Under the pieces are notes generated by a model. The model was not told the DNA's origin, searched no databases, and was given only the letters and a program-made list of their open reading frames with translations. The position numbers and the translations under genes were made by a program. This document shows positions 15,516-39,500 of a stretch of 64,000 bases of DNA, one piece after another. Source of the stretch: Eutreptiella sp. 'Long Island Sound 2002' (taxonomy: Eukaryota > Protista > Euglenida); the NCBI GenBank assembly GCA_964036045.1, contig OZ038378.1, positions 9,982,001-10,046,000 of the forward strand, written 5' to 3'. Positions within the stretch are counted from its first letter, which is position 1. The number at the start of each line of letters is the position of its first letter.

Positions 15516-18500
15516 ATACGTTTGTGTACAGGTGGGCGCTACGGGCCCATGTCGCACTCTCCACCCCCTACACGGTGATGGCTGGCAAAACAGGAAATCC
15601 CGCCGCAAGAGGCGCATGCTGGCAGGCCAGGCTCGGGCCGGCCGGCACGGCAGGGCAGGCACGGGAGTCACCCAGCCACAACCAACGGAAGGTGCTAACC
15701 AACCTGAGGGCTCAGGTACCAGGTACCAGGGCCCAGGTCTGCTGGATGGGGAGTTCAAAACGGGCCGCAAAGGTGTTTTTTTCATCATCGCAGATGGTGT
15801 AAATGCCACAAGAACCTTGGAAGATTCGATGTTTTAGGCACGTGGGGTGAAAAATCCCCCAGTTCGGTGCAGACTGCAATTTCGCTGCGTTGCTGCAGGT
15901 GGGACTCCAGTCATCCTGGTGCATCCTACCATGCTTCTTGCATCACAACATCACCGACCCCACCCCTCCGGGAGGGCATCACAGATCCCCAGCGCAAAAC
16001 TACTTCCATGAGACAACACAAAGTTTTCCTCAGAAGAACGGGGCATGTGCCTGTCAAAAAGGGCCGGGGCCAGCCCTTTTGGAAAGGCCAGTGGCCGCGA
16101 AACATGTCCTTTTGCCTCCCACCATGTTCGTGGGATCACATCATACCAACGCCACCCCTCTGCAGGAGCACCACAGGGCCCTATGACCTGGTCGTTCGGA
16201 CAGCTCGCCGGTAAGGCCAGCCCTGATAAGACTGGAGCACCCCCATCTGTCCCTAGCCCGCTGGTTCATACTGGTCTCCCGGTGTTCCTCCCCTTCCCGC
16301 ATGCATACACCCGACATCACGCGTCTGCCCACAGGTCCTGGCTGCCGTATGCTGCAATCGATGCCCAAGCTGCTTGCATTGCTTTGCAAGCAAGGGGGTA
16401 CTCCGTCACACTGTTAACGGGCGTGCGAGCGACAGAGGACCGTGTCTGCTCTGCACTCCGTGACCTCGTGGGCAATTATCGCAACTTGGGATTCTGGTAC
16501 GCAGGGCACAGTTGCAACAACGGTCGAAATCTACTTTTCTATGACACCGACGGGTTCACACAGAAGGAGAAGGACGAAACCACCGCAGATGTCATAGTCC
16601 AACAAATCAAAGAAGGTGTGCAAGGAGAGCCTCAGGTTTAGGTGGCAGGATTGCGCTCAACCGACTATCTAAGGGTCAGCCGACGTCGGTTGGGCGACAA
16701 CCGACAGCCGTCGCTGATCAGCCGGTGCTCTGTTGATGTCCGGGCGTCCTGGATGGCGGCACTTTTTTGGGGTGCATGAGTGGTGGTCCAGCATTTCTGC
16801 TGCGGCACTTCCTTCAGGTGCTCCGTATTCTTCAGGCAGTCTGCTGCCGCACTTGCTTCACGCCTGCACACACAGCCGCATCGTGTCTGCACGGTACCTG
16901 ATCCACGCCGGCCAGACGCCAGGGACGATGAGCCCATCGGGAATTCACACTGCAAGCGTCGGTGGACGGAGGCACAGGCCAGCGGCATGGGAGGAACTCT
17001 CAGTAACGTGGGGGCAGACGTGTGGGAGGGGGAGCACGGGCTGCGGGGTGGGTCGGGGGGGATCCTGCGGAGTTGTGAGCATAGGAAGTGACCCCAACGG
17101 TTGCCGCAGGATGTGGCTGTGTCATACACAACACAGCAGTCAATACGTCATCGCAACATAACACATTTCAACAGTTTGCTCCATCAAGGTCCTCTGCAAA
17201 GCAGGCATTAAGGGGAGAGACTGTATTCCCACACCCCTCTCCCCTTCAATGCACCTCGCAGCAACAAGCAACCAAGCACGTCCCCGGGCCGGTTTGCTGA
17301 TCAGCCCCTCTCGACGCTTTGAGCTCTATTCCACTGCAGCCATTTTGTGCATTGATTGACATGTGCTGTATTTCACACGAAGTGGGAGGGGGAGGCCGTC
17401 AGACTGCTTTTTGGAATTTGCGGGAACCTGGCGGCAATTTCTTGAACTTTGCTGCAACGCGTGTACAGGAACATGTGGAGACATGTTCTGCCCCCCGCCA
17501 AAGGGCCACCGGCAACCCGCCAGCCCTTTGCCTTCGCCCCCTCACACGGAGCGACACCCTCATACTCCTACGCACGTCCATCATGTTTGCTTTTCTTGTT
17601 CGGTTGCAGTCCCTTCTGAAGTGCATTCTTCCCACATACACTTCACTTTTGCACCATCCCAGGGGGTCCCGCCATCGTTGCGGTATCCACGCTCACAGCA
17701 TCGGGTTTCGGCCGCAGCATCAGCAGCTTCCAACACCTGAAAGCGGGGGTAGTGTACATGACGTGGCTGGCCCCCCGAGTGCCACGCGTACCATCATGGG
17801 CAAGCCCTTACCCCATGCACAGCCCCTGCACACGCAGAAGCCCACACTCCACACCCCTGCACACCACTTCCCGTGTTTGCATCCATGCATCTGCTGGCTG
17901 TCACACCAGCCACACCTACACACCACATTCACACCAAGAGACCCCCATGCCCACACGTTGACATCCCTGACCAGCGGTGCATCCCCACACATCTGCCAAC
18001 ATCAGGTGGTGCAGCCGACCACTTCTTCTCGGTCCTGGATTGCTGCCATGCAGGGTACATGGCGGAGGTGTTGAAGAGGCGGCTGATGGAGCACTGTCCT
18101 CAACTGTCCTTTGACGTGTTTACATCCACCCCACTGCACGTGTCAAGGTGTGCCCCCAGTGCCAGCGCTGGACATGCCCCCGACTCGCTCAGGTTGAGAG
18201 CAACTGCGCGCATTCCGCAGGTACAGGGTGGTGATCTTCAGGGGAGAGGCTGTGATCAGAGTCGTCGCACCAGCGTGAGGCGTCGGCTCCGTGAAACAGT
18301 ACAGAGGGGGGAGGCGGTTTGGTGGCACAATATCGTTTTCTAAAATAGAAACCGAAATTTCCCCCCAAAAAACGCTGTTCCCTGGCGCTTCATGTTTGTG
18401 GGCATTTCTGTTGCAGTCTCCGTTCGCCGTGCTGTTTTGATCCGCCCTTGTGCTGCTGTTGCCATCGCTGATCGTTTGCTGTGACCAGTGTACCCCCCAT

Positions 18501-21500
18501 CCCCACCCCATTTGGGGGGTTCAGCGAAGGAGGCGAATCATGGAGCCCGTCCCTCCATTCATGTCCTTTCCCTCCTCCCGCTCCCGCACCCCCTGCCACT
18601 ACTGCGCCCAGCCTGTGAATCTGATCCAGACCCTGCGCACAGTGCCCCGGTGCATTTCGGCATAACTTACGCACATCTTCTTGGGCGCACCTTTCCAGAG
18701 GGGCCTCCCCCCCAGCCCCCACCTGCATCGCGTTCGGCTTTGTTCTGGGGGAACAGACGGTTCCCCCATTCGTGGGCGTTGGCGTGTTTCATGCAGAAAA
18801 ATTCTGTCCGAATCGTGAGCACTCGCAGACAGGCGCACGCAGACACGCATGCGTGGAAGACATTGGCTGCGGGGATGTGCGTTGGAGGGGTGGTCAACAG
18901 GCCTTTGCTTAGTGGCTGGTTGATACTATACCGGGGGGGGGGGGGGTCAGAGGCCAAAAAAAAGTTTGTGTACCTAAAATCGACCTCCAAGTTCGGGCCC
19001 CTTTGATAAATTTCATTTTTCTCCTGAGGAAAAATTTTCTGATGTGGGTGGGTGGGTGGGTCAGCCAAAATCCCGGAGGGCCAATTTGACCCCCCCCCCC
19101 CCCCCCAGTATCACTAAGCAAAGGCCTGGTGGTGAAACCATTGCTTGGGGAGCATGCCCAGCCTCATGCGCAGCAGCGGGCGGGTACTGCGAGCCATTTG
19201 TGCAGTTTTGTGGTTTTGTGTGTCTGGGGAAGGCGTGTTCCGGACTCCTCTCCTTTGGTGTACCCCCGGGGGCCGCTACGCCGTGGCCTGGGTGGCGGTG
19301 GGAGCACTGCACGGCACCGGGTGCGCAACACACGCAGTCCCGTTGACCACGTTCTGCCGTGCGTCACAGAGCCTCGCCCCTGAACATCGCCATGGACAGT
19401 TACCAGAGCTTCACGGCGCGCATGGTCTGCTCCCTCATGCAGCACCAGGAGCGGGTCCCCGGCACCAAAGTGTTGGAGCAGACCACCGCCCCCTACGAAC
19501 CCCCGACCCCTTGGCCCACGAGTCCCGAGCCGCTGCTCTCCTTCGCCCCGAGCACTCCCCCCCCACCCCCGACGTCCGCGCAGACCGGGACGGATCCCGC
19601 CGGCACCGACAACAGCCAGCCCCCACCCATTGGAACCTCAAAGTTAGTGCCGACCGCCAGCCGCGCGCCGCGCCGCGCCCATAGCGCACCCCCCCCGATC
19701 CCGAAACCTGCCGCGCGCGCTCTGCCTGGCGGTCCTGCGGCGGATGTGGGCGACGACAGTGCACACCTGACGTACATGCACTGCCACACACTGCCCCCGC
19801 AGCCGCTGCCGTTCACCTGGGCCCCCATCCAGCGCTCCCCGCACCCGCTGCCCTCGGTTTGGGAGGCCCGGCCCATGTTCGCGGCACAGCCCCGCGGCGG
19901 GCCCTTCACGGAACTGCGGAACACGGTGCGCTGCAACGACCGCGACAAGACGATCCAGTGCCTTGAGGAGCTCAAGTCGGACCCCTCGATCTTGGCCCAG
20001 ACGGACTCTGCGGGGCAGAACCCCCTCCACTGGGCCTCTGTATTCAACAACCTGACGTTTTTGCAGATGGCGTATGAGTTGTTGGGGCGTTCAGGTGTGA
20101 GCAGCGGGGGGTCTCTGCAGGCGACAAGCCCTTGGGTCTGTTGTGGAGGGGTCCGCTTTGGCAGTCGGTTTGCGGACGGCGGTCGGCGGCCGACCCAAGT
20201 TTGTTTGTGGCGTGCCTCATGGGCATCCTTGTGTAGCGGAAAGTGCGATTCGAGGTCATCAGATTGCAGGGGCGTGGTCCCGCATGCAACCAAAGCTGCA
20301 GTGCACGGTCCGTGTACCCTCAGCACCCCCTGTACCCGTTGTAACCCACTGTTACCCCTGTCCTCCTGTACCCCCTTTACCCCCCGTACCCCATGTGGGA
20401 TGTAGGGTGTGGTCTATGCGTACAGGGCTGCAGTGCGAGTAGCGAGGCGGTTCACGTGCAATACGCCAACAGAATAGGGAAGTGTGTGACCAGGGAACAT
20501 TTGAAAGATCATCGATCGGAAATCAAAAGTCACGCAGTCTGTCATTCCGCTTCGTAGCCTGGCTGTCATTCCTGGTTTTATTTTCCAGTGGATCCCAGCA
20601 GCTTGTTGGTTGGATCTCCAGCCGTTCTCTCCCGCAGTGCTGGCCGTGTTCCACCCTCATTCAAATGCATGGCATGGCAATGCCATCTGCTGCTTCCGCC
20701 TGGAGTTCGAAGTTTGTTCCATGTGCATCATCTTTTGTCATGCATGCCTCAAAGTTTGTCTTCGAGACGCATTTCGTTACACATGCACCCAAAATTGTCC
20801 GTGGGGGTGGAGGAGTTGTTCGGGGGGTGGGGGTTCGACACCCCATTTTTCGATCGCCAGAGGTTTTTTTTTACGAATTTTATCGATTTTGCTCCAAAAA
20901 GGTTTTCCGGTCCCAGGTCCGTGGGGCTCTGGCTCTTCCTCAGGCCGGCCGTGGCCCGTTTGAAATCACTCTTTGCACTGAAAACAGGGTCAAAAGTAAG
21001 CAAGAGTACAAATCGTTGAAAGCAGGTTTTAGCCTCGACAGTTCAAAAATCCACATTTCCAAGACCAAGTTTTTTGCTACTGTGGCCAGTCACACTGATT
21101 CAAGCCAGTTTTGAAGTGGGCATGCGTGCAAGGGAAGGGAGCCCCCGCATCCCCCGGTGAGATTCCGTTCCAGCCGCTTCTGTCCGCCCCCAACCGCCCA
21201 CCAACCGTTGCGCAACCGCCCAAATTTGCTCTCCAACCATTTCCCCCCCAGCAGCTACCGCTTTGACCCCCTCTAATAACACCCCCCTCCAGCCCCTTGC
21301 CCGTACACCTGCAACGGACCCGCCCCTGCCCGTTGCCTCTGTCCATTGCGCCCCCCGCCTCAGTGGAATGGTTCAACCAGAAGGACAACAACCAGCGCAC
21401 GCCGTTGCACTTGGCGGTGTGGAACAACCACAAGAACTGCGTGCTGTTCCTGCTGTCCATCAACGTCGACAAGAACGCCCAGGACAAGGGCGGCTACACG

Positions 21501-24500
21501 CCGCTGTACTTCGCCGTGTACCGCGGCTACGAGGCCATCGTGCTGATCCTGATGGAACACCACTGCGACTGCACCATCCCGTCGTACATGCAGGAGAGCC
21601 ACCTGACGCCCCTGAACCAGGCCTGTGTGCTGGGGCACACCACCGTCATCCGGCTCCTGCTCGGGCTGGACAAGCGCACGCAGCACTTGCTCGTGTTCTG
21701 CCACCCGATGCAGAAGCACAACAGCCGCAACACGGTGGTCCAGCGCACCAGCCCCCAGCACACCCCCGACGACGCCGCGGGCTTCCCCACCGAGACCCCG
21801 GCGGCGGAGCCGGTGTCCATCGAGAAGCGGCTGGAGGGGTACGTGAACGACCCCGACATGAACAACAACACGCCGCTGATCTCTGCCATCCGCAACCGCC
21901 ATCTGGAGGCCGTCACGCTCCTGCTGCAGATGCGGGCCAACCCGGCGTGCACGGACAAGCACGGGGACACCGCGCTGCACATTGCTGTCAACGGGTCCTG
22001 CCTCCCGCCCCCCCATGCTCCCGCTGAGGCCTGCAGTGGACTGGCTCATGGTGCCGGACCCCCCCCCCCTCTCCTGGCCACGTGTTACAAATCCCCACAG
22101 CAGCAGTGGAGGGCACCCTCCACGGGGGGGGCCGTCTCCTCGGTCCGGGTACGCGACTCCCCCCCCCCCCCCTCCGGGCCCTCCGGGCCCACTTAGTTAC
22201 CAAGGGTCAATGGCTACTAGCCATACATAGGGGGAACGTTAGCGCGCCGGGCGCGCGCCGGGCATCTTTTTGGACCCGTGCCCCACCGGTGACCTTTTAG
22301 GGGGTGCGCTAAGGGGGCGCACTTAGGACAATCTTTGAATCCACGCTTCGTTGTATGGTGCATCATGGTGACCCCCGGCATAGGTTTTGACTTCCGATTT
22401 TGTTCCCTTTGTTGGGGACCCCCGAGAATGCAGGGGTGATGTAGCATTTCCGCCCTCTTTTGGGCCCCAACCGTCCGGTGCTATTGAGGAAACCGGGACA
22501 ATCTTTGAATCCACGCTTTATTGCGTGGTGCATCATGGCCCTCCCCAGGCAGGGGGTGTGGGCGCCTACAACCACCTTTGCATTGGTGAGGAGGTAGAGT
22601 GGAGGCCTCCGTTGTTGTAGAGTAACCCCTTAGGCCACCGCGTCTCTGCCAAACTGAACTAGACCTCTGCTAACCCCCTCCCCTAGCCCCCCTCCCCCCC
22701 CGGCAACTAGCAGCGACTAGCAAGTCCCTTAGAGAAGCCCTCCTCGGCGGCTAGCCCCCCCCCCCAAAAGCCCCCCCCCCCCCCCCCCCTAGGGGCCTTC
22801 GGCCCACTTCTGCTGGGGGGGAGAGTCGCGTCTAAAAGCGAGGAGACGGCCCCCCGGTGGCACCCTCCCTTCACGGTCTCAAAATGACTGAATGCGAAGC
22901 CTGTCAGCGCTGGAGTTGGAGCAGTCTTAAAAAAAAAATGGGGAGCGGATATTCCGCCTTCACCCACACCACTACCCCCCCCCCCCCCCCCTGCAGCTCC
23001 ACCAACGCCGCACCAACACCGACACCAACAATGGCGGAACGCGCTCACCCATGCAACAACAATAGAGGGCAGCCCAGGACAGCAAAGGACAGCCCAGAAA
23101 AGACGCCCGGGGCACTGCGGACCCTGGGTGATGAGCCAACAGACTCTTTACAGGGGAGGGGGGGGAGGCCGCGGACTCCTCCCTCTCCCCAACTGCGGGG
23201 ACGCGTACGAAGGGGAACTAGCCCCGGTCCCGAACCCTTAGACTGAGGGCGGGCGCTATGTGCATGGTCTACCACCGCCGCGTCAGCTAAGGCCATCATG
23301 CCAGCAAACAGCATGCAACTACGCCCAGGACAGACTGGGATATGTGGGCCAGCAGAAGCAAGTGGCCGAAACCACCCACATTAAGCACACTGACACCAAC
23401 AAGGAGCCCCCTTGAGCCAGGATCTCCCTCCTCAAGGGGAAGGAGGGGGCAGGGAGAGACGAACCCACTCCCACCCCCCCTCCCCCGCCCCCTCCCCTAC
23501 CCCCTCCCTACAGCAACACGCACCCCCGCCACCCAATGCCCCCCAGGGCAGAAAGAATGGAGAGGGCAGGGAAGAAACAGGGCAGGGGAAAGGGACGAAC
23601 CAAGGAGGGTAACAGGGCAGGGCAGACCGCGCTCGCCGAAAATGGTGCAGAGCGCAGAAGGGGAACAAGGAAAGGAAAAACGGGAAAAAATCATTGTGGT
23701 TGTTAGAAGCCCCTGTCAGGAAAATTATCCTGCAGATGCACACCCCAGCGCGCTCAAGTCAGTGCTGGAGTCGGCAAACCCAGCATGGACTCGGAGTGTG
23801 CATCTGGATGCACCTGGTCAACGGCACGGGCAACAGCCCATCTCCGGGACAGCCGACCCTGGAGTAGTCAAACAGGACAAGTCATCCAGGGGCTCCGTTG
23901 ACACGACCAAAACACGTTCGGGCCCACAGAGGGTCAGATTGAGCAGTGGCGAGAGGCCAATAGGCGCCGCCAAAGGCAAACAATCAGATACCGAGGCCTT
24001 GTGCCAACCCCCCCCCCCTCCTCCTGCTGACGTCTGACTGACAGCTACTGACTGCGATTGTCTGACTACCTGTAGGCAGACATGATGTTCTGGTTTCTGT
24101 TTCACACACAGTGTGTGTCTTGAGGTTTAACCAGGTTTGGCACAGAGAATAGAGATGCACTGATGCCTTACTGTGGGGTGCATTACCTCGGGTTTGCACT
24201 TGTCTGTTTTTTAATTGCCCCCCCCCCCTCCATTCTAAAGCAAGGTTGCATCCACTGACCTACATTCACCCGCCACCGGCAGGGTTCAGATGCAGTCATT
24301 CCTGGACAGCGAAGTTCAGGCGGGGTCCATACAGGATGGCAGGTTGACGTGCAGTACCACCGGACGTCCGGTGCCATGTCCGTTGTATGCCCTGCTTTGG
24401 TTGGTTGGGGGCAGTTCTGGGAGGAGGGGGGTCTGGTCTTGCCCTTTGGGGGGCGGAGGCCTGTTGGATCTGGTGTGCTGCCTTTTGTTTGTCTGTACTC

Positions 24501-27500
24501 TTCTGTTGTGACAGAGGTAAAGGCCCGTGGGTGGCGGCAACATCGCCCGGCATGAAACCCCCAAAAGTCATGAAATGAGCATTTGTGGCAGTATCACGGT
24601 GACAGCGGGGTTTCCCTAAGGGGCATCGGTAGCCAGCCATATTCTTGTGACATTGCAATGGATCTATCTAAGCGTGTTTCTCTTGTGGCTGACCTGACCT
24701 GACACGAGCGGTTTCCAAGGAGGAGGGTTACCCCTCTGCCCAGACATGCATTAGAAGAAAAAACAAAAATGCCACTCTCACCCAGGAAACCGCGCACTTC
24801 TTACCGCACTTTCAATGGGGGGCACAAAAACATGTTCTCTAAAGCCCGTTATGTGCCAGATTCAAAGAGGGTTACCGAGTCTCCCCGGCCGAGTCTCCTT
24901 GAATCTGGCACTCCACGGGCTTTGGAGGTCATATCAACAGTGGCCCCTCGCTATGCTGGGGTGATTAGTTGGCAACACTAACCCTATTCCCTTCAATAAT
25001 GTGTCCACATTGAACCCCACGGGGCCTGGCACCCCCCAGGACGGCCCCAGGGGGGGCTTCGCCCTCGGAGGGGGGCCAGAGTGCGCATATATGCGCACAT
25101 ATTATATGAATAAGTCGCAGGCAGTCAAGGCCAACCGTCAGCGCTGCTGCATGTATCCCCTGTGCCCCTTCAGTGCGCTGGAAAAGTTTGTTGACAAACT
25201 GTTGGAGGCCATGAAGGACAAAGAGGAGCTCTTGAAGCGAGTCAACAAACGTGGGGAGACGGCTCTAGACGTAGCCCTGGCGAATGAGGAGATCACCATC
25301 GCCAAGAAGCTGCAGCAGTACGGTCTTGCAGAGCACGAGGAGACGCCTGAGTACACATGTCTGATATGTTCCAGTCTATTATATGAGCCGTGCACGCTCA
25401 GCTGTGGGCATACCTTTTGTATGTACTGTGGGACTGCCTCTGTGAAGCCCGAGACAGGGGGTCTCTGCCCCTTCCGGTGCAATATCAGGACCACATCAAC
25501 GCCGCAGAAGAACCTCAGGATCGAGAAGGAGATCAAGGAGAAATATCCAGAGCACTTCCAGCGGCGCGAGGCGGCGTTCTTCAAGCAGCGGGCCAACGCG
25601 TGTCTGCAGGACTTCGCGCGGGTCATCAACCCAGGCAACCCTCTCAAGTTCAATGAGAACAACACGGTCCACATCACCCACGAAGACATTGATTTGCGGG
25701 TGACGCTTCTGCGGCGGGAGCTTTACGTGTACCACGTGCTGCATAAGGTACTCTCCTGTGCACGTCTGCATCTGTTGTTGGGGCAGGATGTGGTGTGGGG
25801 TGGGGTGTGCTTTAGTGATGGCAGGATGAGCTTTGTTTCTGTGGCGAAAGCGTTTGCTTCAACAGCGGCATCAACGGCCCTGCTCAGGTCAGGGTCCGGT
25901 TTTTGAGGATGGGTTGTGCGTTAGCTTCCCGGTGCCATTGCAATGCAGGGACTGCCCCCGGACGACAAAAAGGAGACCAAGCTCAAGATGCTGACCATGA
26001 TCTTGGAAGGCAATCTCCTGGGCTCCTCCTGCTGCAGCGGGGGCATCACCATACTGACCAACAACGAGATTGTGCTGCACATGAGCGTGCAGCTGTACAT
26101 TGCCAAGCCTCCGGCACTCCGCGAGGTCATCACGGTGTTTGCCAAGTGCGCCAAGGGCTGGCATCGCCACCTGCAGGCGGTCCTCGTTGATGAAGACCCC
26201 TCGCAATGCGAGCCCATCATCAGCGAGTCCCCCGCACCATCATTGATGTCCGAGCGCGTGGGGGATTTCGAGAAGGTCCCCCTCATATCCCCCCCCCCCC
26301 TCCTGCCCATCATTCTGCCGCTACATCCTCGCTCTCCCTGCTTGCTGCCGTCCCTTGCCATGCCTTTCTGCCACAACCCTGTGCCATCAGGACCACATAC
26401 GGAGGGTCACATGTGCTAGGAGGGCCCTGTTGTGGGGTGGCTGTAACCTGCAATTGTCGAGGGAGAGGCTGCAACACACAATTGCAGTGTGGTGGTGGTG
26501 GCTGCAGGCCTTGCACCAGCATTGTACCGGCGCTTCCAAGAAAAATGGACCTTGGCAAAAGCGGCCCATGGTTTGCCAGGTCCCAGGAAATTGCGCAAGC
26601 GTCAAAATGGGTGGTGGTGGTGGAGGGGGTTTGCCATCTCCTCATGCCCGCTCCCCACCCGCTCCCCAAAACTGGGGTATTTGGTTTGGTTGTTTGAGGG
26701 GCTGGTGCAAATTTGACAATAATTTGGGGGGGATATTGCTGACTCATGAATGCACAGTTTCATTGCAAAAAGCATAGCTACACCCTTGAAGTGTGCCACG
26801 CAATTGCCTGCCACCTCAAAAACACGACTCCTCCAGAATTTTCCCAAAAGGATTGCTCCGCTTGCCCTGGCTTTGTGAGGTGAGTGCTCATACATTTGTT
26901 GGCTGTTGATATTAAGGGAAGCACGAACTGGTTTTCGGTGGCATTGGGGCCCTGTGGTGCAGAGGGGTGGCGTTGGTGTGATGTGATCCCACGAACATGG
27001 TGGGAGGCAAAAGGACATGTTTCGCGGCTGCTGGCCTTTCCAAAAGGGCTGGCCGTGGCCCTTTTTGACAGGCACGAAATCCATGCTTGCCCCGTTCTTC
27101 TGAGGAAAACTTTGTGTTGTCTCATGGAAGTAGTTTTGCGCTGGGGATCTGTGATGCCCTCCCGGAGGGGTGGGGTCGGTGATGTTGTGATGCAAGAAGC
27201 ATGGTGGGATGCCCCAGGATGACTGGAGTCCCACCTGCAGCAACGCAGCGAAATTGCAGTCTGCACCGAACTGGGGGATTTTTCAGCCCACGTGCCTAAA
27301 ACATGGAATCTTCCAAGGGTATTGTGGTATTTACACCATCTGCGATGATGAAAAAAACACCTTTGCGGCCCGTTTTGAACTATGTTTGTACGGCTGAATT
27401 TGACTCTTTTGGTCAAGGAAGGGGGGGAGGGGGGCTTGTGGGGGCATCTCAGCAGATGGCCAGCAGATGGATGTCAGATGGCTGGGGGCATCTCAGTTTG

Positions 27501-30500
27501 AACATGAGATTTTGTTTTTGGTCTTGTCAATTCTGTACCTGTTTTGTTTTCATCATGACAGTACAAAGTGATCAAACAGCAGTTGTAGAGCTTGGTTCAC
27601 ACTTCTTTTTGCATTGTGTTGATGCAGTGTGCTGGGACACAAAGTAGGACACGTTCGGCCATGTGACTCCAGCTGTATCGTGCATCCCCCACCCCCCGGC
27701 AAAGGGAAGGACAACAGAGTGTCAAACAAATAGATGAATATTGAGGTTTCCAAAATGGATTTTGTTTCATTTCTAGGCTCTCAAAAACAATCAAAAACCA
27801 CCTATAAAGTTTTTTTTGCACTTCTTTTGCATTGTGTCCATGCATTTTGGTTGCGAGACATGGCAAAGAGGGGGGCATTGGCAGTTGAACCCAGGGCCTT
27901 TCATTCAGCCCCAGGTGGTCACAATTCAAATCACCTCGAAGAGAGGTTGTTAGTGCGGGCGTGGGCACCATCGTTTGCATAGCTTACCCCAATGGGTGAC
28001 ACCAGATGTCTGACCCCTTGTAAAATCATCATTTGGGAGAGAAAATGATCCCCCAATGACTTTTTTTGATTTTGACCCCTCTACTCCCTGTACCCGGGGG
28101 CCACTTCTTTTTTGGGGTGCAGGGTTGGAGGGGTTCCAAATTTTTTTTGCGTTGTGGCCATTGTGTGTCAATTTAGACCTTGGTCCTGAATAACTTTTTT
28201 CCTTTTCATGGACCCCCTAACCAATGGTGAACCCTACCCCAAGGGATGGGATTTTGGTTTAATCCCTTGTAAAACCATTATTCTGTCCAATAGACACATC
28301 CCCCAATGAGTTTTTGGTTTGGACCCCCGTTGCCCCCCCCTCCCCCCAAATTGTCGCCCAGGACATTTGGGTTGGTCTTGTGTGATCATTTGGTGACAAT
28401 TGGGATTACGTACAAACACATGGGGAGCCATGTAGCACCACCGCGAATAGGCCCCAAAAGGGGGGGCTATGTGGTGTTTTCCCATGTTTGCGGGCCTGCA
28501 TGGTTTTGATCTAACAACCTCTGCAAGTTGATTTCCAGCCGGCCAATGCCAACCTGAAAACGGCAAAGTCCTCACCATCAGGGGCCCACAGGGGGGTCGA
28601 CTGGGGGCACCCAGAGTTCAGACCCAACTAGGCCCTCTTAGTGGGACATATTGGCCCACGAAGGCCTGGGCATGTTTGCATTGTAGTGGGCAAAACTTGG
28701 TTGGCGCCATTGTGTGTTAATTCAGACCTAAGTCCATCTCATTGCACTTTGTTCTTCTATATGAACCCCTCACCAATGATGGGGGTCTCGGGTGTCATCT
28801 CAAATTTCCTAGACCGCCCCCCCTATGGGGCCCCCAATTGTGAGCACTTCACTGTTTTTAGTCGCCATGTGTTAGCTGAAAAATTGCGATTCTTGGGTGA
28901 CCTTTGACAACCCTTGGGGACCCTTGGGCTTTTGTCGGGTGATAATTTGGTGACAATCGGAGTGTGTGTAAGCCCATGGGGAGCCATGATGCTGAAGGAT
29001 GATGGATGGCTGCAAAATCAGCCACTTGGAGGCCCATTGCTTGAGCCAAATCTTGTGCGAGGTGGACATGCCGAAGGCAACAAGATTTTTTACATTATTG
29101 CTTTTTCTGAAATCCTTAGGTCGCCTCTAGGATGGATTTGGGTGATTGTTTGCTGACAAAATTGGCAGCCCAAGCCCATGTAGCCCAAGCCATGGTCCCC
29201 CTAAAAGCCCCAAAATTGCTGTTTTTGAGGCTGTTACTTACCCTCAACGTCACTTGTCTCTCTTTGGGTGCCTTGCCAAACGCAATAGAATTTTTCTACA
29301 AAGGTTGCATGCAAATTGTCAGTGTCATACAATCGTAGGGTGGCTGTACACGACAGCCGTTGAGGGGGGACAACAAGATGCCATTGAGAGTGGGAAGGTG
29401 GGGCGGCTGTGTCACCCGCTTGTAGAGATTATGTTGTGACAGACAAGGATGGGGAGTGGTAAAGGAGGCTGTAGCTTGCAATTGTTGGAAGCTGAGGTTG
29501 GTTGTACTCGCAAGGTCAGTGGTGTACCCTTCCAAGGGGGTGCGTATTCCCGGGTATGTGGGATGGCATGCTGCCAGTCACGCCTTCAAGCAGGGGGAGG
29601 GAGGTTGGTGTGTGACCCTGCAAGGCCAAAACAAAACAAGAAAACATAGAACATAGATGTTCTGACATCAGTCAGAACATCAGTTAGATGAGGATGAGGA
29701 TGAGGATGACACCGACAATGATGATGAATTTGATGACTGGTGCATCAGTTCATTCGTCCTCTGGACTGATTCCCTTAGCTGAACTGCCCCAAAGTCAGTC
29801 AACTTTCTTATGACACACTCCCTTGTCCTTAGTGGTGACCCTGAGTCGATGGGCACGGCATTTCTTATGGTACAGGGCAAGAGCAGCATCAACAATGTAT
29901 TGCAGCCGTGGCCCAACATCCTTTGATAATGATAGGGCTAGGAATTGGCTACATCTCCGCTAGCACATCAGGCCCGCTGCAATAGGAAAGACAGAAATAG
30001 GATGAGGTCATTTGACAATATGAACTTCTTATTGTGATCCAACCCAAATTTGGCACCAGAAAGTGTTTTTCCAGCTGCTTTCTTAGGGGGGGGGTGGGGG
30101 GGGGCGGGGGAGAAGTTTGAAGGCGGGTGGAATGTAGGAGCCCGAATGAAAATTCGTTCTGAAGCGCATTCGCACCCCCCCTGCCCCCCAACCCTGCTGT
30201 AAGTGCTGGTTCAATTTTGCCCGGGGGTGGGGGGGGGGGGGGGCAACTGGGTCAAAACTAGGTTCTCCTTGACAAAACACAATTCTTGTCCTCCCAGAAT
30301 GGATGTTCGATCAACGAAGATGGGCAGTGAATGGGAAGTGACAATTCTGTGTTTGTGTACACCGGATGAGCTCTTGTACCCTGATGGTTCAGCCTCATTT
30401 CCTCGTCCCATCTCCTCCCTGGGTCAATTGCTCTGCCCGTCATGGTCACAGCGACCGTGGCGGCGGTTTGCTCTGGGGACAACCATTTAAGGGGCCTCAG

Positions 30501-33500
30501 CTTTGTGATGATAACGATTCCCCCGTTTTCACATGCTCCATGGATTTTCCTGGTTTGGGGTCTGTCATTGAATGACGGTGCGTCTTGACAGAAGGCAGGG
30601 GCCCAGAGCTGTTGACCCACAACACAGGCCCTGCACAGTCTCTTGTGCACTGCCCTCCCCTTCCACTTCCTGGTGCCAGCACAAGGCTTCACTGTGCCTG
30701 TCTCTCACCGGGTTGCGGTCTGGCGGTGGCCATTGGCCCCAAGTGCCATGCAGCGGAGCCTGAAATACCCTGATAGACCTGTTTGGCTGTCTCAGTGCCA
30801 GTGGGTACTTCATCATCGGTGTGGTGGTGCGGCATGCATCAACCCACTTCGAGGTGCTTTGCCAAAGGCAACATTTTTTGGGGGCATTTTTGATTCCGAA
30901 CCAAGGAAACGCTTTCGGCTTCGAAGTCACTGCGACCTCCTCAGGCTGGTATGGCGGGTGGGCTGGACAGTCAAACCAAACAATATGCCCAGTACCGGAA
31001 ATTCGTTTCCTCCTCCGCTCCTTGAGACTGAGTTATCGCTTGGCATGCCTCCGTCCCGCTCTCTCAGGCCCACCAAATGGTGGATTACTTCAAGCAGAAC
31101 CTGCACGTCAGTGACCAGCAGAATCTGCACTTCGACAACAACAAGACCTGGCACCTGAAGAGCGCCCGCTTCCAGCTCAACATCACGTACGAGCACCGCT
31201 CCGACTGCCTGTACGTGTTCTCCCCGGTTTGGAACGGGCTGCCCAAGCGCGATGAGGTGAAGTTGGTGTTGTATGAGAAGCTGCTGCGCCTCAACCTCTT
31301 CTTCACCGACCTCCCGGGCGCTGGGGTGGGCATTGACACCCACGGCGACTTTGTCCTGATCCACATTGTCATGCAACTGGGGAACGTGCCCCACACGCTG
31401 CTGCACGACTGCACGAAGCTCTTCATGAGCCAGATCGACCGCTGCATCCAGAGCGTCAACCAGACCATCAGCGACCCCTCACGTCGGTCCCGCAAGCCCT
31501 CCACAAAGGTGGTTTGTGTCCATGTGCTTTACCCCCCCAGTGCCCCTGCGTTCGTGTGCCTACCCACAGCCTGCCCCTGTGTTCCTGAAGCTGATATTTC
31601 TTGCTCGCCTGTTCATGTTTGCACCAGATCTCATGTATTAGTTTGCTGCTGCTGGGCCCACGTTGTGCCCAAGTCAACCCCAGTTTCAGAAGGCAGTGCA
31701 GGCTGTGTAGGATCCATCGTGCCCCCTAAGTTTGCGTGCCACAGGTTCCCCCCTCGACCGGTGTACAGGACAGCAACCCCGCTCCGTTACAATTGCATGT
31801 TACCCCCCCCCCCCGCCCCCCAAACACTGTCAACTGTACCACAGCCACACACGACACCAGCAGGTAGGATTCCGCCACCCCCCCCCCCCCCCGCTCCCAC
31901 CCATACCACCAAACATCCAACCCTACCCACCCGACGAATGCTTATGATCCACCCCATCCCACACCCCGGTCCCTGCGTGCCCCCCCCTGTGAATCTAGCA
32001 ACCCGCACAAACGGGTTAGGCAGTGGGGCAGTGGTGGTGGAGGTATTCGCACTGTAGGATAAGCCTGGGAACCTGACCCCCCAGTGCCCCTGCGTGCATG
32101 TGTCCACCCTCCAGTGCCTGACCCCCGGTACCTCTGTCCATGTGCCTACGCCGAGTGCAGGGGCACCGAGGGGTCAGCACATGAGCACAGGGGCATTTTG
32201 CGGGGCAGGCATCACCAATGATATGAAGGATGTGTGTCGGGGACACAAATCACGCGAACACGGGATTATGCGGTCCGAACCCACCCATTTGACCCCAGAA
32301 CTGCCAACTGCTGCACCGTGTGATCCATAAAAGCCGTCATTTGCTCGTTTTTCGACATCGACCCTGGCGTTGTGGCCGGTGGTGGGGGGGGAAGCCCACC
32401 GTTTCCGACGCCTTCGTATGGGACATGGTGTTGGGGAACCAGGCGTGTAACTGGGGTAGACGTGCCCTGTGTCTTGCCGCGTACCCGTGCCCTCGTGTGT
32501 GTGTGCCGTGTGGGTTCCAGTGCACCCCCAAACACGTGCGCAGGAGGAAATCGAAGGCGTGTGGGGCGTCAAGGACAACCTGCGCGTCGTGAAGGAGCGG
32601 GCGGCGTTGTCGTTGTGCACGGGCATGACCCCCAGCGCTGAGGAGGAGCGGGAGGCCCTGGTGATCTCGCAGTTCTGCCAGCACCTGGGGGACTGGATCG
32701 AGGAGCGGGCCACGCAGCAGCTCAACCACTCGCCCTCGCAGTTCAGCCCCGTGCAGCTCAAGCTGGCGCTGTGCATCGGCATCAGCAAGTACAGCGGCGT
32801 GCAGACCGGGGACGCCAGCCCCCGGGAGCTCCCGGGCTGTGTGGAGGACGCGGTGTTCGCCGCACTGACGTTTCAGAAGTTGGGCTTCCACGTGCTCTCG
32901 GTGCTCAATGAGAGCGCCACGACGGCCACGGTCATGCATCTGCTGAACGCTGTGCGGGCGTGCGCCGAGGGCCGGAAGCTCGCGGCATTTGCGCTACACT
33001 TCTCGGGCTACGGGGCGTACCGTGTCGTCGATGGCCGGTACCAGGCCACACTGCTGACGCACGACTGTGACGAGGTCCCGGCAACCCCCATGTCATGCCG
33101 CATGCTGTGTGGGCACGGCTCTTCCGGGGTGTTTGGGCAGCAGCCCTGTTGTTGTGACGTGGTGTTTGCCTCCGTGGGCCCGGGCCTTCGCAAGAGCTGC
33201 CCGGCTGACTGCAGTGCCCCCTCCCCTGCGCATCCCCCCTACTCCGAGAGCACAATGACCCCCATCTGAAAACTTCGACTTGGCGTATGTAAACACACAG
33301 GATCATGCAGCAATCTCCATAATTCAGAACAATGCATCGAAAAAGAAATGAAGTTTCTGTTGTAGGAAGACCTAGGTTCAAATCCCAGCTCGGCACTGTT
33401 TGGCTCAGTGAAGGTTGGGTGATACATTTTTGGTTTTCATTGCAGAGCACCCTTACTTGGACCCCCCTCTTTTGCCTATCTCCCTTGTGGAAAAGTGGAA

Positions 33501-36500
33501 AAGAATACCCCCATAGCACTGCATGTTGGAGGAATTTTCCCATCCTCTTGCTTGACTACCCGTTCTGCTCCCAGTGATCCCCAGCTTAGTGCAGTTGCGC
33601 TGTGCGTGGACTTGTGACCTCATGGTTGTGGATTCAACAACGGCACAGAGTGGAGTGGCCAGGGTGTACATAGGCCGTGGGCCGTCCACCGTCGCCGTGG
33701 TCGCTGTTTCCGTGGAAAATTGATTGAGCTGCATGATCTAATGCGGGACAGCTTTCATGGAGGGACCTACAATGCAGTCTCCAAGTGTACAGCGAGGGAC
33801 CTTTAGTGCGCCGGGTGTGCGCCGGGCATTTTTTTAGGCCGCAATGATCCTGACCAATACAATACCAATACCAATTGCTATGCAAGATTCATCCACCCTA
33901 GGGACCCCGAGGAGGCAGGGGATACTTAGCCTTAGGCGGCCTTATGTTGTGTGCTCTATAAGGAAGGGTTTGGGGTTGATTTTGGCTTCTCTAGGCGAGG
34001 GTAAAATTGGGGCTAGAGTTGGGATACTTCACACAAAAGTAGCGAGTCGAGCGTGCGCTGGGCAAATGCCTCCTCACAAGTGCTTGTAAGAGCGCTGGTA
34101 CTGCGAGACCATCGGGCTTTGTGGGGTTCCTCCTTGCTAATCCATTTACGCTGTAACAACTACCAAACCTTAGGGCACATCTGTGCCACCACTGACCGAA
34201 AAGGCTTCCAATATAGTTTGATAGATGGTTGCTGGGGCCCCTTTGGCTTGTGAAGCCCCCCGTGCCATGGCAATTTTGCCAAAATAGTGGAGGCTACACA
34301 CATGCAAGGGGCTGCCACACACCCCTACACAATATTCTTGGGATGCTGCGCTGCGTGCACACAGAGGATATGTTGAAAAGAGGACAGGTTGAAAAGCAGA
34401 TATATAGCAGGGCTATGAATATCCCGCTATCAGGACCTTACTGGGGCATCATCTTAGAAATGTGCCAATTTAGGGAAAATGGGGGGAAATGGGGGAAGCA
34501 GTGAATTTTTGGGATGGTGGAGAATAATGGGGAAGGCTCAGTGTGAAAGGCCCAAAAATGCCACTTTTGGCTGGGAAACTGGGGAGGAGGGTCACAAATA
34601 GGCCTCTGAGGGGAGGAAAGATGGGGGGGAATGAAAACTAGGCAGCAAAGGAAGAGACATTCTTTGTGTAATGTGGGAAATTGGGGGTGGGTTGATGAGG
34701 AACCTCCCACAAGCAATGTTCCATGGTTACATGGTTGCATAGTTGTCTTCTTGACCCCTCGCTGTACTATATGCTGCTGCCCAACATCCTAGGTGTCCTA
34801 GTTGTCCGTGCCGCTTCTTGTGACGTTGGCTGTTCCTTCTCATCGCTAAAGTGGGTGAGCGACAAGCAACAATCCAGCTTAAAATGTGATACTTACCAAG
34901 CTGTTGTCCTGCTACACTACTATGGTGTCCTATAGTAGTTGTCCCCCCCCCCCCGTCTAAGCTATGGCCTTGTCTCAGCTACAGTGGGCGTAGGGACTGT
35001 ATCAATGCTGTACCTAATTCAATTCGGTACGAAATGTAGTGCAACCGCATAAGACATGGTTTTGGTGACAAATCTGCCAATTGCATGGAGTCATGGACAC
35101 ATTTGTTGTGTCCATGTTGTGTCCATGTTTGCCCACTTGAACCCACAGAGCTCTGATTTTGGGGATATTTGTGCATTATCTTCCCATTTCTTGGTGGTGG
35201 CCTGTGTGCCGGTAATTGTATGTGCCGCGCACAAGCTACGGCCTTGTCTAAGCTACAATAAGCGTAGGGACCATATTAATTCTGTACTTTTGCGTGGCTT
35301 AGACAGGGGGGGGGTAGCATTTGTGTTGACCACAGGGTGGGCTGAAATGTGGATGCAAAGGAGGGGTTGTATTGCTGCATGTCCTGCTTCTCAAAGGCCG
35401 GCGACAATGAGTCCCTGGTAGGAGACGATACCCCAGCGATGGGTGAGTAGATACTAGGCTCCCCGGCCGCCTACCCAAGCTATGCGAACGCCGGGGAACA
35501 GGTGCCCACCTCAATTTTCCCCCATCCTGCCCTATTGTTCCCCAATTGGTCCTCCATTGTTCCCCCATTCCCCCCACTTTCCCTGTTTCCCCCCTATTAC
35601 CCCCATTTTCTACCATTTTCCCCCCATTCCCCCCCATTCCCCCCCTTGCATTTCCCCCCATTCCCCCCCAATTTTCTTGGTTTCCCATTTTTGGGAACCT
35701 TAGGGGGAACCTAAGTGGCAGCCCGGGTGGGCTATTCATGTGACTGCTCACTTTCCATATGTTGCTTTCGACCCCCTGTTTCCAAGAGCTGCTAGGGCCA
35801 GAAACCTTTCCTTCTTGATCAGTCTGTGTAGGTCCTCCAACAGCATCAATGATCTTTGAGCATTCCCCAAGTGTGAATGGGGGGCACAACCTAACCGAGG
35901 TGAGCCAAGGGACATATACACATGCACGGTTGAAAACACAAGAGACGAGATCCTACTGAATCAGTGCCACAGACATTCCACTCTCACCCACAAACTGACC
36001 CCCCCCCCCCCACTCCAGCCCTCACTTCCCTTCCTCCTCCCCACAAACAAACTCCACTAGAACCACACACAGTCCCTCCCCGAGCTGACCTTGATCAACA
36101 AGCAGATCATACAAGAGAAGTGGCGCAAGCTACTAAGGGGGTTGGCTCCGGCAGGGATGGCACTTCTGTGGGAAAAGCAAGTCTTCGAACCACAAAATTG
36201 TGCCCTGGTTGCCCAAGGCCTCACTAGCCTCCCAGGGAACCTCCTTTCCAGACAAGGGCTCTATTGGAAGGGCGCCAAACTTCGCATGGGAACGGCTCCA
36301 TGGCTGCACAGATGACCCGGCCCCAAAGTGTGGGGCCAGGCCCAGAGAGGTTGTAAGTCCCTCAAATATAGTGCAGGAAGCGAGTAACCAATCGTCACCC
36401 CCCCCCCCCCCGCCCCCACACAGACAAATGTTTTGGTTCCTTAGGGCCCGGAGTTGGTAGGTTGCCCCCCCCCGCCCCCCAAAAAAATGGCATATGGTGC

Positions 36501-39500
36501 AATGGCAGTATGCAGGGTCACCCTCTCCAACCTGCCCAATGCGCCCCCGTATTCCCTGACAAAAGCCCTGCGCTGCCTTCAGGGGATTCCGATCCACATA
36601 CTGAAGGCCCTCAGCAACTTCTTCATGGAGAAGGACGTGCAGACCGTGCACTTCATTCTGGACTGCGACTTTGCTTGCCGCCCCTGCGTTGGCAACCCCA
36701 AGGACCCCCACCTCACGCCCCGCAGCAGCCACAACTTCACGTGGGCCCGGCCCTCGGTGTTGAGTGACCGCAAGTGCTACCCGTCCGCCGGGCCGCACGA
36801 CCCCGTCCAGCCCCAGTGGCTGGAGCACCAGAGCAACGCTGTGAGCCAGGCGGCGGGGTCAAGCTGCGGGTCCGGCGGGGCGGGGTGCACCGAGAACTGC
36901 GACGTCTCGCTCATGCGGGAGTGGGGGACGCTGCGCCCCCACATGTGGGTGATGGCGGCGTGCCACTCAGACGAGCGGGTGCACACGTGCACGGCCAACG
37001 GGTGCGTGCTGGGGCGGTTCACGTACTGCTGCTACAGCACTCTGCTGGGCACCTCCGCCAGCCACCCGGCCCCCATCCCAAGTGAAGAGCGCCGCCCCAG
37101 TACCGACGACGTGGCGACCGGCGGCGGGGCTCGGGGGGCGTTCGGGGCGAAGGAGCCAAGCCCAACGAAGGCGCAGCCGCACATGGACGAGCCCCTCCTG
37201 CCGTCCGGCAAAGTGGTGCTGGAACAGCTGGCGCTGGCTCAGGAGCACGACGGGATGCTGGCGCTGAAGCTGCCGCATCGGGACGACAAGAAGCGTGCAG
37301 TGGACGAGGACCTGCGCCTGCGGATGCAAAACACCACTGCGTTCAAGAAGTCGCTGGCGTCGCTGTTCGATGACATTCGTGTGGCGATGCGGTACAATAG
37401 CTTTGCAGGTGTGTGCCCAGCCTCACCACGGACTGACCCCCCTGCCAACACTCCCGTCCGCAGCAATTGGCCAAGGGTTCTGGGCAAGTGTTAGACATCG
37501 GTGGTATGCAGTAATTCCAGGTATTTGCCGCCGGCCTTTTTTGAAGAAGCACCCACACCCAAGGTAACACCCTGGGTCAATAACTGGTGCGGTCGGCCGG
37601 GGGGGGGAGGGGTGCCATTGCAATTTTGGGTTTGGGATTGGGGAGAGGGAGGGTTCCATCATGAAGGCAGAAACGGCACAAAGCAGGCACTACTGCATGC
37701 ACCGAAGAGCAAATGAGCGGAAGATACAGCAGGAGCAGTTTCTGGATAAAGGCCAGGCTTGGGTTGCCAATGCATTGACAAAAGATCCAGTCGCTGGGCT
37801 CAGACAGTGCCGTCTTTTGTTCTACCCAGATGCACACCCCGGGTGCGGGCCCGTGCAGGGTGGGCTGTTCTCTGACGACTCCACCCTACAGCGATCCATC
37901 CGATGGCTCTTCCGACCAAACGTCTTGCAGCCCTGACTGTTGCAACCGTCACTGCTATTGAGCCGGACCTCCTACATCCATTCCGTGAGGTAGGCTCTAT
38001 GCCTGACTGTGCGCTGCTGGTCAGTAAGCCTGGTCAGTCAGCCTGTTCATTCCCAAAGATGCCAATATCAACCCTCCCCCCCAAATTGGCCTTCGGATCC
38101 CTGTTTTGCACCCAGTTTCACCCATTTTCACCCATTTTTTGCTCATTTCCACCACATCCACTCCTTTTTAGGTTGATTTCTCCCCACAATGGGGACCCCA
38201 AGAAGGCAGGGGCTATGTAGCCATTCTGCCCACACGTGGGGGGGTTAAGCAGCCACTACCGCTGTCAGGTTCCGATGAGCTCCAGCCTGCAGCTGATCCT
38301 CCGTGCTGCGGGCGGCAACAGTTGGGAGGTTCCCAGTTGAAGCTGCAGGATCCAGAGTGCATGGCAGTGCCCACTCCTGTATTCATCTCCTGTTTTCATC
38401 CTGTATTCCTGTGGTCATTTGGGATATCGCCGGGGCAGTGGCAGCCTATGCACATTGCTGTGCTGTCTTGCTGGTGACAAGAGAACTGGCAGCCCTTGCA
38501 GCCCTAACACAAGGCATGCAAGAATTGGTGCTTCAATGTGAGATGCGCTCCAGCCCCCTCCCTCTCCCTCCTCAAGACCAGTTTCGCCACCTGATGAAAT
38601 AGTCCCGCTGGTTATCTCAATCAAGGCCTTGTTTGTTCGAATCTGCCTCAGTACATGACAATCCCCCCCCCCTTCCCGGTCGCATGTCGGTAGGTGAGTG
38701 GGTGGGTGGGGGCAGGGCCTGATTGGCCCCTCCCCATGACCTCTATCTTTCAGCAAAGGCCCGTTCTTGTCCTCCCCATTTGCTAAGCACCATGGCTGCC
38801 GTGCACGTGCCTTGCACTGCAGGGGGCGGCCCCGAGCAGAACCCGGTGCTCATAGCACAGCCCTACACGTGCCGGTTCAAGCCCTTCGACATGGACAAGC
38901 CACTGCTGAACGAGATCGCGGAGGAGACGTACAAGTCTTACCCGCGCCCGTGCCCGCAGCGAGGCCTCGTGGTGGCCGCCGGGGCGCTGCACGGCGTGAC
39001 CATGGGGCAGGTGTTTGGCGTTGCGATGCTGGACAACTGCCACGAGGAGCTGTGCAAGGCCGTGGTCACGGCCGTGCAGGACGCACAGTCCACGCTGACC
39101 CCCGTCGGGGACACGTCAGGGCTGCAGCCCCACACGTCGTACCACATCATCGAGACGTGGGACGTGGACCCGACTGTGGCGCTGCACACCTCCGGCAACG
39201 GGACGGAAGGGCACGACAGTGACCTCCCGCTGACGGCGGTGATGGAGCGCAGCATCGCGGTGTCACTGTGCTCGGATGCGGTACAGCCCAATCCCCGGGC
39301 TCGCTGCCCCACGCTGCTCAACCAGAGCCAGCTCAAGGTGTGCCGTTCAGGAATTTCATGGCGTTGGTTCAGGATTGTCCGGGGCATTCAAACGACCCAA
39401 ACAACGCCATTGCGGCCCCTTACGAGGCCCCTAAATTGTTCCGCAGAACACAGAACACAAGTACATATGGCAGTCGCGATGTCCATGCAACCCTGTGGAG

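Follow-up and report, generated by a model that had tools for sequence, protein, structure and literature searches.

Organisation of the locus

The locus studied here lies in a stretch of 64,000 nucleotides (hereafter, the window) of contig OZ038378.1 from the euglenid Eutreptiella sp. 'Long Island Sound 2002' (assembly GCA_964036045.1, positions 9,982,001 to 10,046,000 of the forward strand). A sequence-only reading of the window had described, at 16335-37408, a single polypeptide with two caspase-like (C14) domains: domain 1, carrying the motifs YAGHS and LDCCHAG and a complete His/Cys dyad, and domain 2, carrying FSGYG and LDCDFA, in which both catalytic residues are replaced. Our analysis supports the view that an intact-dyad C14 domain and a dyad-less one are encoded in one spliced gene. 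All four motifs were found on the + strand at the positions given below, in exons of one intron-rich gene. This gene starts upstream of the proposed start and extends far past the proposed end. The homologous proteins described below gave collinear tblastn matches at 19.9, 21.4, 25.2, 26.0, 31.1, 32.8, 38.8, 44.8 and 61.9-63.0 kb of the window. Since the collinearity extends to 61.9-63.0 kb, the gene probably spans about 49 kb, with its end near 63027. We infer one very large gene on the + strand, running from approximately 14271 to approximately 63027 (14.3-63.0 kb of the window), with introns of 0.2-5 kb between its coding pieces. The following parts of the gene were assigned:

14271-14350, + strand: candidate for the first coding exon (domain 1), with ATG followed by VLVVG, a beta-1-like strand
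16335-16615, + strand: domain 1, exon A (YAGHS at 16498-16512, His codon at 16507-16509); 3' end predicted
18006-18147, + strand: domain 1, exon B (LDCCHAG at 18035-18055, codon of the Cys at the catalytic position at 18044-18046)
19370-20090, + strand: exon C, comprising the end of domain 1, the Pro-rich linker (about 150 residues), the ancestral start at ATG 19875 and the first of the ankyrin repeats
21363-21995, + strand: ankyrin repeat exon (Pfam Ank_2, E 1e-28; tblastn matches of all homologues); 3' end approximate
25175-25747, + strand: C3HC4 RING finger, preceded by the last ankyrin repeat and followed by the first half of CesT-like domain 1; 5' end approximate
25949-26275, + strand: second half of CesT-like domain 1 (Pfam CesT, E 0.002)
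31068-31508, + strand: CesT-like domain 2, with the fold of type III secretion chaperones (Pfam CesT, 35.2 bits)
32530-33074, + strand: first half of domain 2, the dead C14 (FSGYG at 33000-33014, Tyr at the His position at 33009-33011); 5' end approximate
36583-37408, + strand: second half of domain 2 (LDCDFA at 36658-36675, Asp at the Cys position at 36667-36669)
44802-44969, + strand: U-box-like exon (Pfam U-box, 16.6 bits), aligning to residues 1256-1311 of homologue P0004
61901-63027, + strand: conserved C-terminal exons with the probable stop (tblastn matches of the last 100-170 residues of P0003-P0007)

Among the upstream open reading frames, only the candidate first exon had a strong donor (GG|GTGTGA), a phase compatible with the acceptor at 16334|16335 and, in VLVVG, a motif resembling a beta-1 strand. 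The spacing between its VLVVG and the I-D-A motif of exon A equals that in the metacaspase L003 of the same genome, with no gap. The hhalign analysis of its 26 residues did not indicate any signal. The best canonical donor at the 3' end of exon A was AAG|GTGTGC at 16615, in frame with the acceptor at 18006, and an alternative was present at 16635. Because the best canonical junction between exons A and B is 16615|18006, the residues GVQGEPQV, which had been taken for the last eight of the first exon, are probably intronic. In the second half of CesT-like domain 1, the identity to the Euglena gracilis homologue (P0002) reached 66%, and the junction (K|GLPPD) was the same as in that protein. The first exon of domain 2 closes on a GAG|GT donor at 33074, the phase of which is matched by the acceptor at 36582|36583. 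At the 3' end of the gene, the open frame closes at 63024.

Domain 1 has both catalytic residues in place

Domain 1 was compared with a profile (A2) of nine C14 domains, eight of which came from metacaspase loci of the same genome. The hhalign probability was 92.4% for exon A (E 5e-7), with its His on the YSGHG column, and 73.7% for exon B (E 3e-5), which fell on the DCCHSG column. The two matches were collinear, and both members of the proposed dyad thus occupy catalytic columns. A custom small hidden Markov model recovered exon A with an E value of 0.0098 among all open frames of the window, and PF00656 was present in 84 of the 100 ESM-Atlas clusters nearest to this exon. No match to exon A was found by sequence search of PDB. 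Its nearest relatives were the type I metacaspases L003 and L004 of the same genome (35-37% identity, tblastn E ~1e-4), in which VLDCCHSG takes the place of the VLDCCHAG of exon B. Exon A is present as a single copy in the genome. Its GC content at third codon positions (GC3) was 0.57, an intron-like value, compared to 0.74-0.97 in the conserved exons of the gene. A word-based search for relatives with exon A in its open frame, spanning proteins of 115-366 amino acids, returned the query alone.

The catalytic competence of domain 1 is uncertain. As noted in the sequence-only reading, Ser follows His, replacing the Gly of the oxyanion hole. The SGCxDxQTSAD metacaspase motif was not found after the domain 1 Cys in the alignments to L003 and L004; by eye, this region contained a short beta-5/helix-like stretch only. 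Of the four positions that we take to form the S1 pocket of TbMCA2, domain 1 keeps only the two acidic ones.

Domain 2 is a C14 domain with both catalytic residues replaced

The first exon of domain 2 was recognised by Pfam as Peptidase_C14 (PF00656; 32.9 bits versus a cut-off of 21.4). In the comparison with A2 by hhalign (96.3%, E 1.7e-9), its Tyr was positioned on the His column. The second exon alone was not recognised by A2, being too diverged. The assignment of Asp to the Cys position was therefore based on the family alignment and on a fold model of the homologue P0003, which align LDCDFA to the beta-4 strand, the strand of the catalytic Cys, where P0003 bears FDCNFS. The model of P0003 residues 712-935 had a mean predicted local distance difference test (pLDDT) score of 69.6, with values of 80-94 over the first 130 residues and low confidence in the C-terminal half. 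Its best PDB matches were Arabidopsis metacaspases 9 and 4, MALT1 and GSU0716 (Foldseek E 1.7e-5). A later CC pair, weakly favoured by hhalign over LDCDFA as the Cys strand, was rejected, as the alignment and the model placed this pair in a helix.

The replacement of both residues, as originally described, extends to the relatives of the gene. In the window protein and the five full-length homologues, the residues in the His column are Y, N, R, Q, A and A, and those in the Cys column D, N, D, gap, E and gap. The dead state of the domain is conserved across these homologues; the residue at the His position varies. None of these homologues restores His or Cys, so the loss is ancient and domain 2 has not merely decayed locally. 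The dead domain is ancestral to the family, old, and conserved as a non-enzyme. All four of the positions that we take to form the S1 pocket of TbMCA2 (C, D, S and D) are kept in domain 2. Another C14 domain without the dyad was observed elsewhere in this genome (L007, C20:41396748-41397386, minus strand), with FYYAGYS and LEAARG at the places of the His and Cys motifs.

Linkage of the two domains

The only RNA run containing the stretch was an estuary metatranscriptome, the contigs of which had 0 differences from the window and covered exons only. One contig (16334-16593) ran on for 43 letters into an upstream exon. Another joined 18032-18145 to 19368-19519; the AG shared by both sides resolves to a GT..AG intron at 18148-19369, which gives the joint 18147|19370 between exons B and C. 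A third contig (19893-20090) continued into the next exon. As these contigs cover both catalytic motifs of domain 1, the motifs are present in processed RNA. Downstream of the 18147|19370 joint, the frame continued without interruption into the open stretch 19347-20402 with the first ankyrin exon. The 168 codons from the acceptor to the ancestral ATG contained no stop (estimated chance ~0.007 at this base composition), and GC3 in the reading frame of this linker stretch was 0.81-0.92.

These data also bear on a possible division of the locus into two genes, a small metacaspase-like gene upstream of an ankyrin-RING gene, with the joint produced by read-through or chimeric assembly. Every homologue starts at the ankyrin repeats, Euglenozoa can co-transcribe neighbouring genes, and the contigs were assembled from a metatranscriptome. 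Against this, the borders of the joint are exactly those of a GT..AG intron and the frame is kept across it, no stop closes the domain 1 frame before the ankyrin repeats, and the contigs were 100% identical to the window on either side of the joint. We consider two separate genes highly improbable.

For the remaining part of the chain, from the ankyrin repeats to domain 2, five full-length homologues carry the same domains in one protein, which points to a single chain in the window as well. The proposal that both C14 domains belong to one polypeptide was thus supported, by the RNA joint and the open frame at one end and by the homologues at the other.

A protein family of ankyrin, RING, CesT and dead C14 domains

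A search with the RING-CesT exon (25175-25747) across 1.84 billion representatives identified six relatives:

P0002: a transcript of Euglena gracilis (795 amino acids)
P0006: a transcriptome protein of Entosiphon (Entosiphon sulcatum; 2057 amino acids)
P0003, P0004, P0005 and P0007: four intronless genes from assemblies (1678-1982 amino acids)

Ankyrin repeats, RING and two CesT domains were present in all six homologues. Five of them continue through the dead C14 domain, and the E. gracilis transcript stops after the second CesT domain. A U-box was detected above or near the cut-off in P0003 and P0006, at the same relative position as in the window. The order of the family is ankyrin repeats, RING, two tandem CesT domains, a dead metacaspase-like domain, U-box and a conserved tail. 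The ankyrin, RING and CesT elements originally placed between the two C14 domains were therefore found there, with two CesT-like domains. The eight Cys/His positions of the RING were invariant in the family alignment (A1); P0004 and P0006 pass the zf-C3HC4_2 cut-off, and P0003 passes that of the U-box. The score of CesT-like domain 2 (35.2 bits for 31032-32054) exceeded the PF05932 cut-off of 22 bits, and the model of P0004 residues 310-1000 matched SicP, SchA, SycH, CesT, ExsC and VecA, as well as MALT1. A word-based search with residues 310-690 of P0004 returned the query alone, and scans of the IMG/VR and JGI metagenome contigs did not yield relatives of the family. A full-text literature search found no paper describing this architecture, and the family is undescribed. 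An apparent literature match for CesT and U-box in trypanosomes (the ESB1 paper) was dismissed, since it arose from the author name Cestari.

In all six homologues the protein begins with the ankyrin repeats, and domain 1 is missing. Their residues 3-10 align at 19908-19914 of the window, just past the in-frame ATG at 19875, and both transcriptome proteins (P0002 and P0006) begin with Met right before the ankyrin repeats. Domain 1 thus appears to be a newer add-on, unique to the window gene among the relatives found. Since all five full-length homologues carry the dead domain without His and Cys and without domain 1, the dead domain does not depend on domain 1.

A second ankyrin-RING-CesT copy was observed on another chromosome of the same genome (C5:15408543-15434339, minus strand; L011, L024). 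It was 57-80% identical to the E. gracilis transcript, compared to 47% for the window copy. No match to exon A of domain 1 was found at this paralogue or elsewhere in the genome, and the exons for its dead C14 domain were not found by protein search or in the stretches examined.

Homologues on virus-like contigs

P0003, P0004 and P0007 lie on gene-dense contigs (L014/L025 = k119_111391, 178 kb; L016; L018). The intergenic gaps on these contigs were mostly ~25-130 bases, and the neighbouring genes were mostly ORFans or could not be annotated. The recognisable neighbours comprised an HNH nuclease, an SNF2-like helicase, a protein kinase, DHFR-TS, a NIF phosphatase, and SET and Macro domains. The contig of P0003 had a GC content of 21%, and four or five of its genes, P0003 included, have the octamer AAAATTGA 50-100 bases upstream. 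We take AAAATTGA to be the mimivirus early promoter. From these properties, we infer that the three contigs are probably giant-virus genomes. No giant-virus hallmark gene was seen on them. On the GC-rich contig of P0007, a separate C14 protease of 487 amino acids (PF00656, E 1.3e-9) is encoded three genes upstream of P0007; the contigs of P0003 and P0004 had no C14 gene in the vicinity of these homologues.

Euglenids and giant-virus-like genomes seem to have the family in common. Trees of the RING-CesT1 and CesT2 regions showed neither the donor nor the direction of a transfer, and a word-based homologue search with the neighbouring helicase returned the query alone.

Discussion

The explanation that we prefer, with a probability of roughly 0.55, is that a host-derived C14 head was spliced onto an ancient ligase-like scaffold, in which it plays an accessory role and is not part of a co-evolved switch. 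We read domain 1 as a probable recent capture of exons of a host type I metacaspase, which would have been spliced in frame onto the old 5' end of the window gene only and would encode a compact C14 domain. In the encoded protein, the ankyrin repeats would recruit partners, and the tandem CesT domains, as a pseudo-dimer, together with the dead C14 domain could hold extended peptides and serve as modules for peptide binding or scaffolding. The chemistry of the protein, in this view a ubiquitin ligase that captures its substrates and has two E3 domains, would fall to the RING and U-box. Domain 1 may then be an accessory protease or a protease-derived binding head, tethered through the Pro-rich linker and acting on the clients of the ligase or on the linker itself. 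Both the E3 ligase activity and the roles of the modules are predictions.

Several results weigh against this explanation. On the RNA side, a full-length transcript was not seen, and RNA cover was lacking for the first exon, for the A-B junction and at 19520-19892, where an intron is therefore possible. The RNA evidence consists of low-depth assembled contigs from a single metatranscriptome. As regards domain 1, Pfam did not match its exons at E 0.1 when they were searched separately, and no p10-like part was identified, hhalign of 19371-19670 giving no signal. The ligase assignment is affected by the scores of the window RING (18-23 bits, below the cut-offs of the Pfam families) and of the window U-box, which fell short of the Pfam cut-off of 21.4. 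The euglenid homologues at hand may be orthologues of the contig 5 paralogue and not of the window gene, and the absence of domain 1 from orthologues was partly covered, the word-based search having spanned proteins of 115-366 amino acids. Finally, the separate C14 gene near P0007 hints at a recurrent link of the family to C14 proteases, which is underplayed when domain 1 is viewed as an accidental add-on.

Nothing yet shows that the two C14 domains regulate each other. The built-in activator, inhibitor or decoy pair put forward in the sequence-only reading did not find support, given that the dead domain is ancestral and that domain 1 is a lineage-specific, single-copy add-on with differing codon usage. 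Metacaspase-type C14 enzymes are active as monomers and do not need dimerisation, so the analogy to cFLIP is weak. A live domain 1 and a dead domain 2 could nevertheless pair, within one chain or between two chains, in the manner of caspase-8 and cFLIP and gated by the ankyrin, RING and CesT modules. The presence of both domains in one reading frame would agree with such pairing, as would the S1-pocket positions kept in domain 2, the separate C14 protease encoded close to P0007 and a precedent from Euglenozoa, the reported interaction of Trypanosoma brucei MCA4 with an active metacaspase (PMC3220528). Pairing is opposed by the greater age of domain 2, which is kept in five full-length relatives devoid of domain 1, by the origin of domain 1 from the monomeric metacaspases, and by the other two virus-like contigs, in which the family member has no C14 gene nearby. 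We regard pairing of the two domains as unlikely.

Domain 1 may alternatively be an exapted or decaying remnant without activity, with the main product starting at the ATG at 19875 or at an internal trans-splice site. The intron-like GC3 of exon A (0.57 versus 0.74-0.97 elsewhere in the gene) would suit a remnant, and so would the Ser in place of Gly after His, the change of two of the four S1-pocket positions, the absence of the SGCxDxQTSAD motif, the failure of Pfam to detect the separate exons, the low RNA depth and the ancestral Met kept at the homologous position. However, the frame is open over at least three exons and the 168-codon linker, both His and Cys are kept on the catalytic columns, and the domain 1 exons are precisely spliced into mature RNA. 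On balance, an inactive remnant is doubtful, although it is the strongest of the alternatives to a host-derived accessory head.

A bolder scheme would regard the protein as a 'cut and tag' machine common to euglenids and giant viruses, built around an intramolecular pair of a live and a dead metacaspase. The CesT pseudo-dimer would hold an unfolded client, the dead domain would read a basic cleavage site, the live domain would cut it, and the RING and U-box would ubiquitinate the product; the C14 protease of the P0007 contig would represent the unfused version of this partnership, and the fusion in the window gene a Rosetta-stone link. We consider this scheme a long shot, less likely still than a simple pairing of the two domains.

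The window gene can be compared to several known systems. One of them is metacaspase 4 of T. brucei, a pseudopeptidase reported to act together with an active metacaspase (PMC3220528). Both cases concern Euglenozoa in which a dead metacaspase homologue has been retained and is, or in the window gene may be, functionally tied to an active one. The trypanosome proteins are separate and small, whereas the window gene places both domains in a single chain, of ~2000 residues or more, that also has ankyrin, CesT-like, RING and U-box modules; a further difference is that domain 2 has lost both His and Cys. Bacterial pseudo-orthocaspases include His-to-Tyr and Cys-to-Ser variants (PMC6426788). They share with domain 2 the p20-type C14 domain, the Tyr at the His position and conservation as a non-enzyme. 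In contrast to the window family, in which the Cys position holds Asp and the His position is varied, they are prokaryotic and occur stand-alone or with other partner domains.

The likeness to cFLIP and caspase-8 is that a dead C14 paralogue is found beside a live one. Those proteins are true caspases, activated by dimerisation and residing in separate chains, whereas the window domains are metacaspase-like and the dead one is far older than the live one. MALT1, a top structural match of the dead domain of the family, is likewise a large signalling protein of several domains that includes a C14 domain and is coupled to ubiquitin ligation; it differs in being catalytically active, in having death and Ig domains and in recruiting a separate E3, while the window gene encodes RING and U-box in the chain. 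The tandem domains matched the fold of CesT, SicP, SycH and SchA, with target template modelling scores (TM-scores) of up to 0.82. Such class I chaperones are small bacterial homodimers, whereas the window family has two copies in tandem in a eukaryotic, apparently also giant-virus-borne, ligase-like protein. Folds of type III secretion chaperones thus occur outside bacteria, in what would be a eukaryotic use of a bacterial fold. With respect to pseudo-proteases in signalling machines, the locus may be regarded as a natural experiment, in which a large scaffold with two predicted E3 domains has kept an anciently dead C14 domain and, in one lineage, has received a probably recent fusion of a live-looking one. 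The sharing of the family by euglenids and giant viruses, if true, bears on gene exchange between protists and viruses.

Introns and repeated elements of the gene

The exon structure of the gene was also compared to that of a related species, represented by a genomic contig of 3481 bases and 46% GC (L026; Logan SRR32963565). Its exons shared ~80% identity with those of the window, and the encoded protein 76-92%. The contig, too short to reach domain 1, splits the single RING-CesT exon of the window into at least four small exons, so the number of introns varies among close relatives.

Several introns contained repeated or open sequences. A short dispersed repeat with many variant joints, also present in the metatranscriptome, was located at 18898-19128, inside intron 3; its summed contig depth in a genomic run was ~48,000, compared to ~30 for the flanks. 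In the intron between the 41-kb exon and the U-box exon, the stretches 41598-43256 and 44100-44540 comprise an open frame of 553 codons, which had no Pfam match, and long (CACCA)n runs that flank this frame and translate as HHTTP repeats. Three similar open frames of ~150-210 codons each (52501-53121, 53804-54250 and 54815-55438) were found further downstream; the region 52501-55438 is a tandemly repeated element with a unit of ~1.15 kb in a downstream intron.

Non-canonical borders, TC..CA, seem to delimit the intron at 20091-21362, which separates the first two ankyrin exons. The RNA contig match ends at 20090, and three homologues were gapless across the junction (R|VEWF); a GT..AG alternative four bases further on would insert one residue. 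The first and last 40 bases of this intron can pair strongly with each other (duplex of -34.6 kcal/mol, calculated without a shuffle control), and it would fit a non-conventional intron of the euglenid type.

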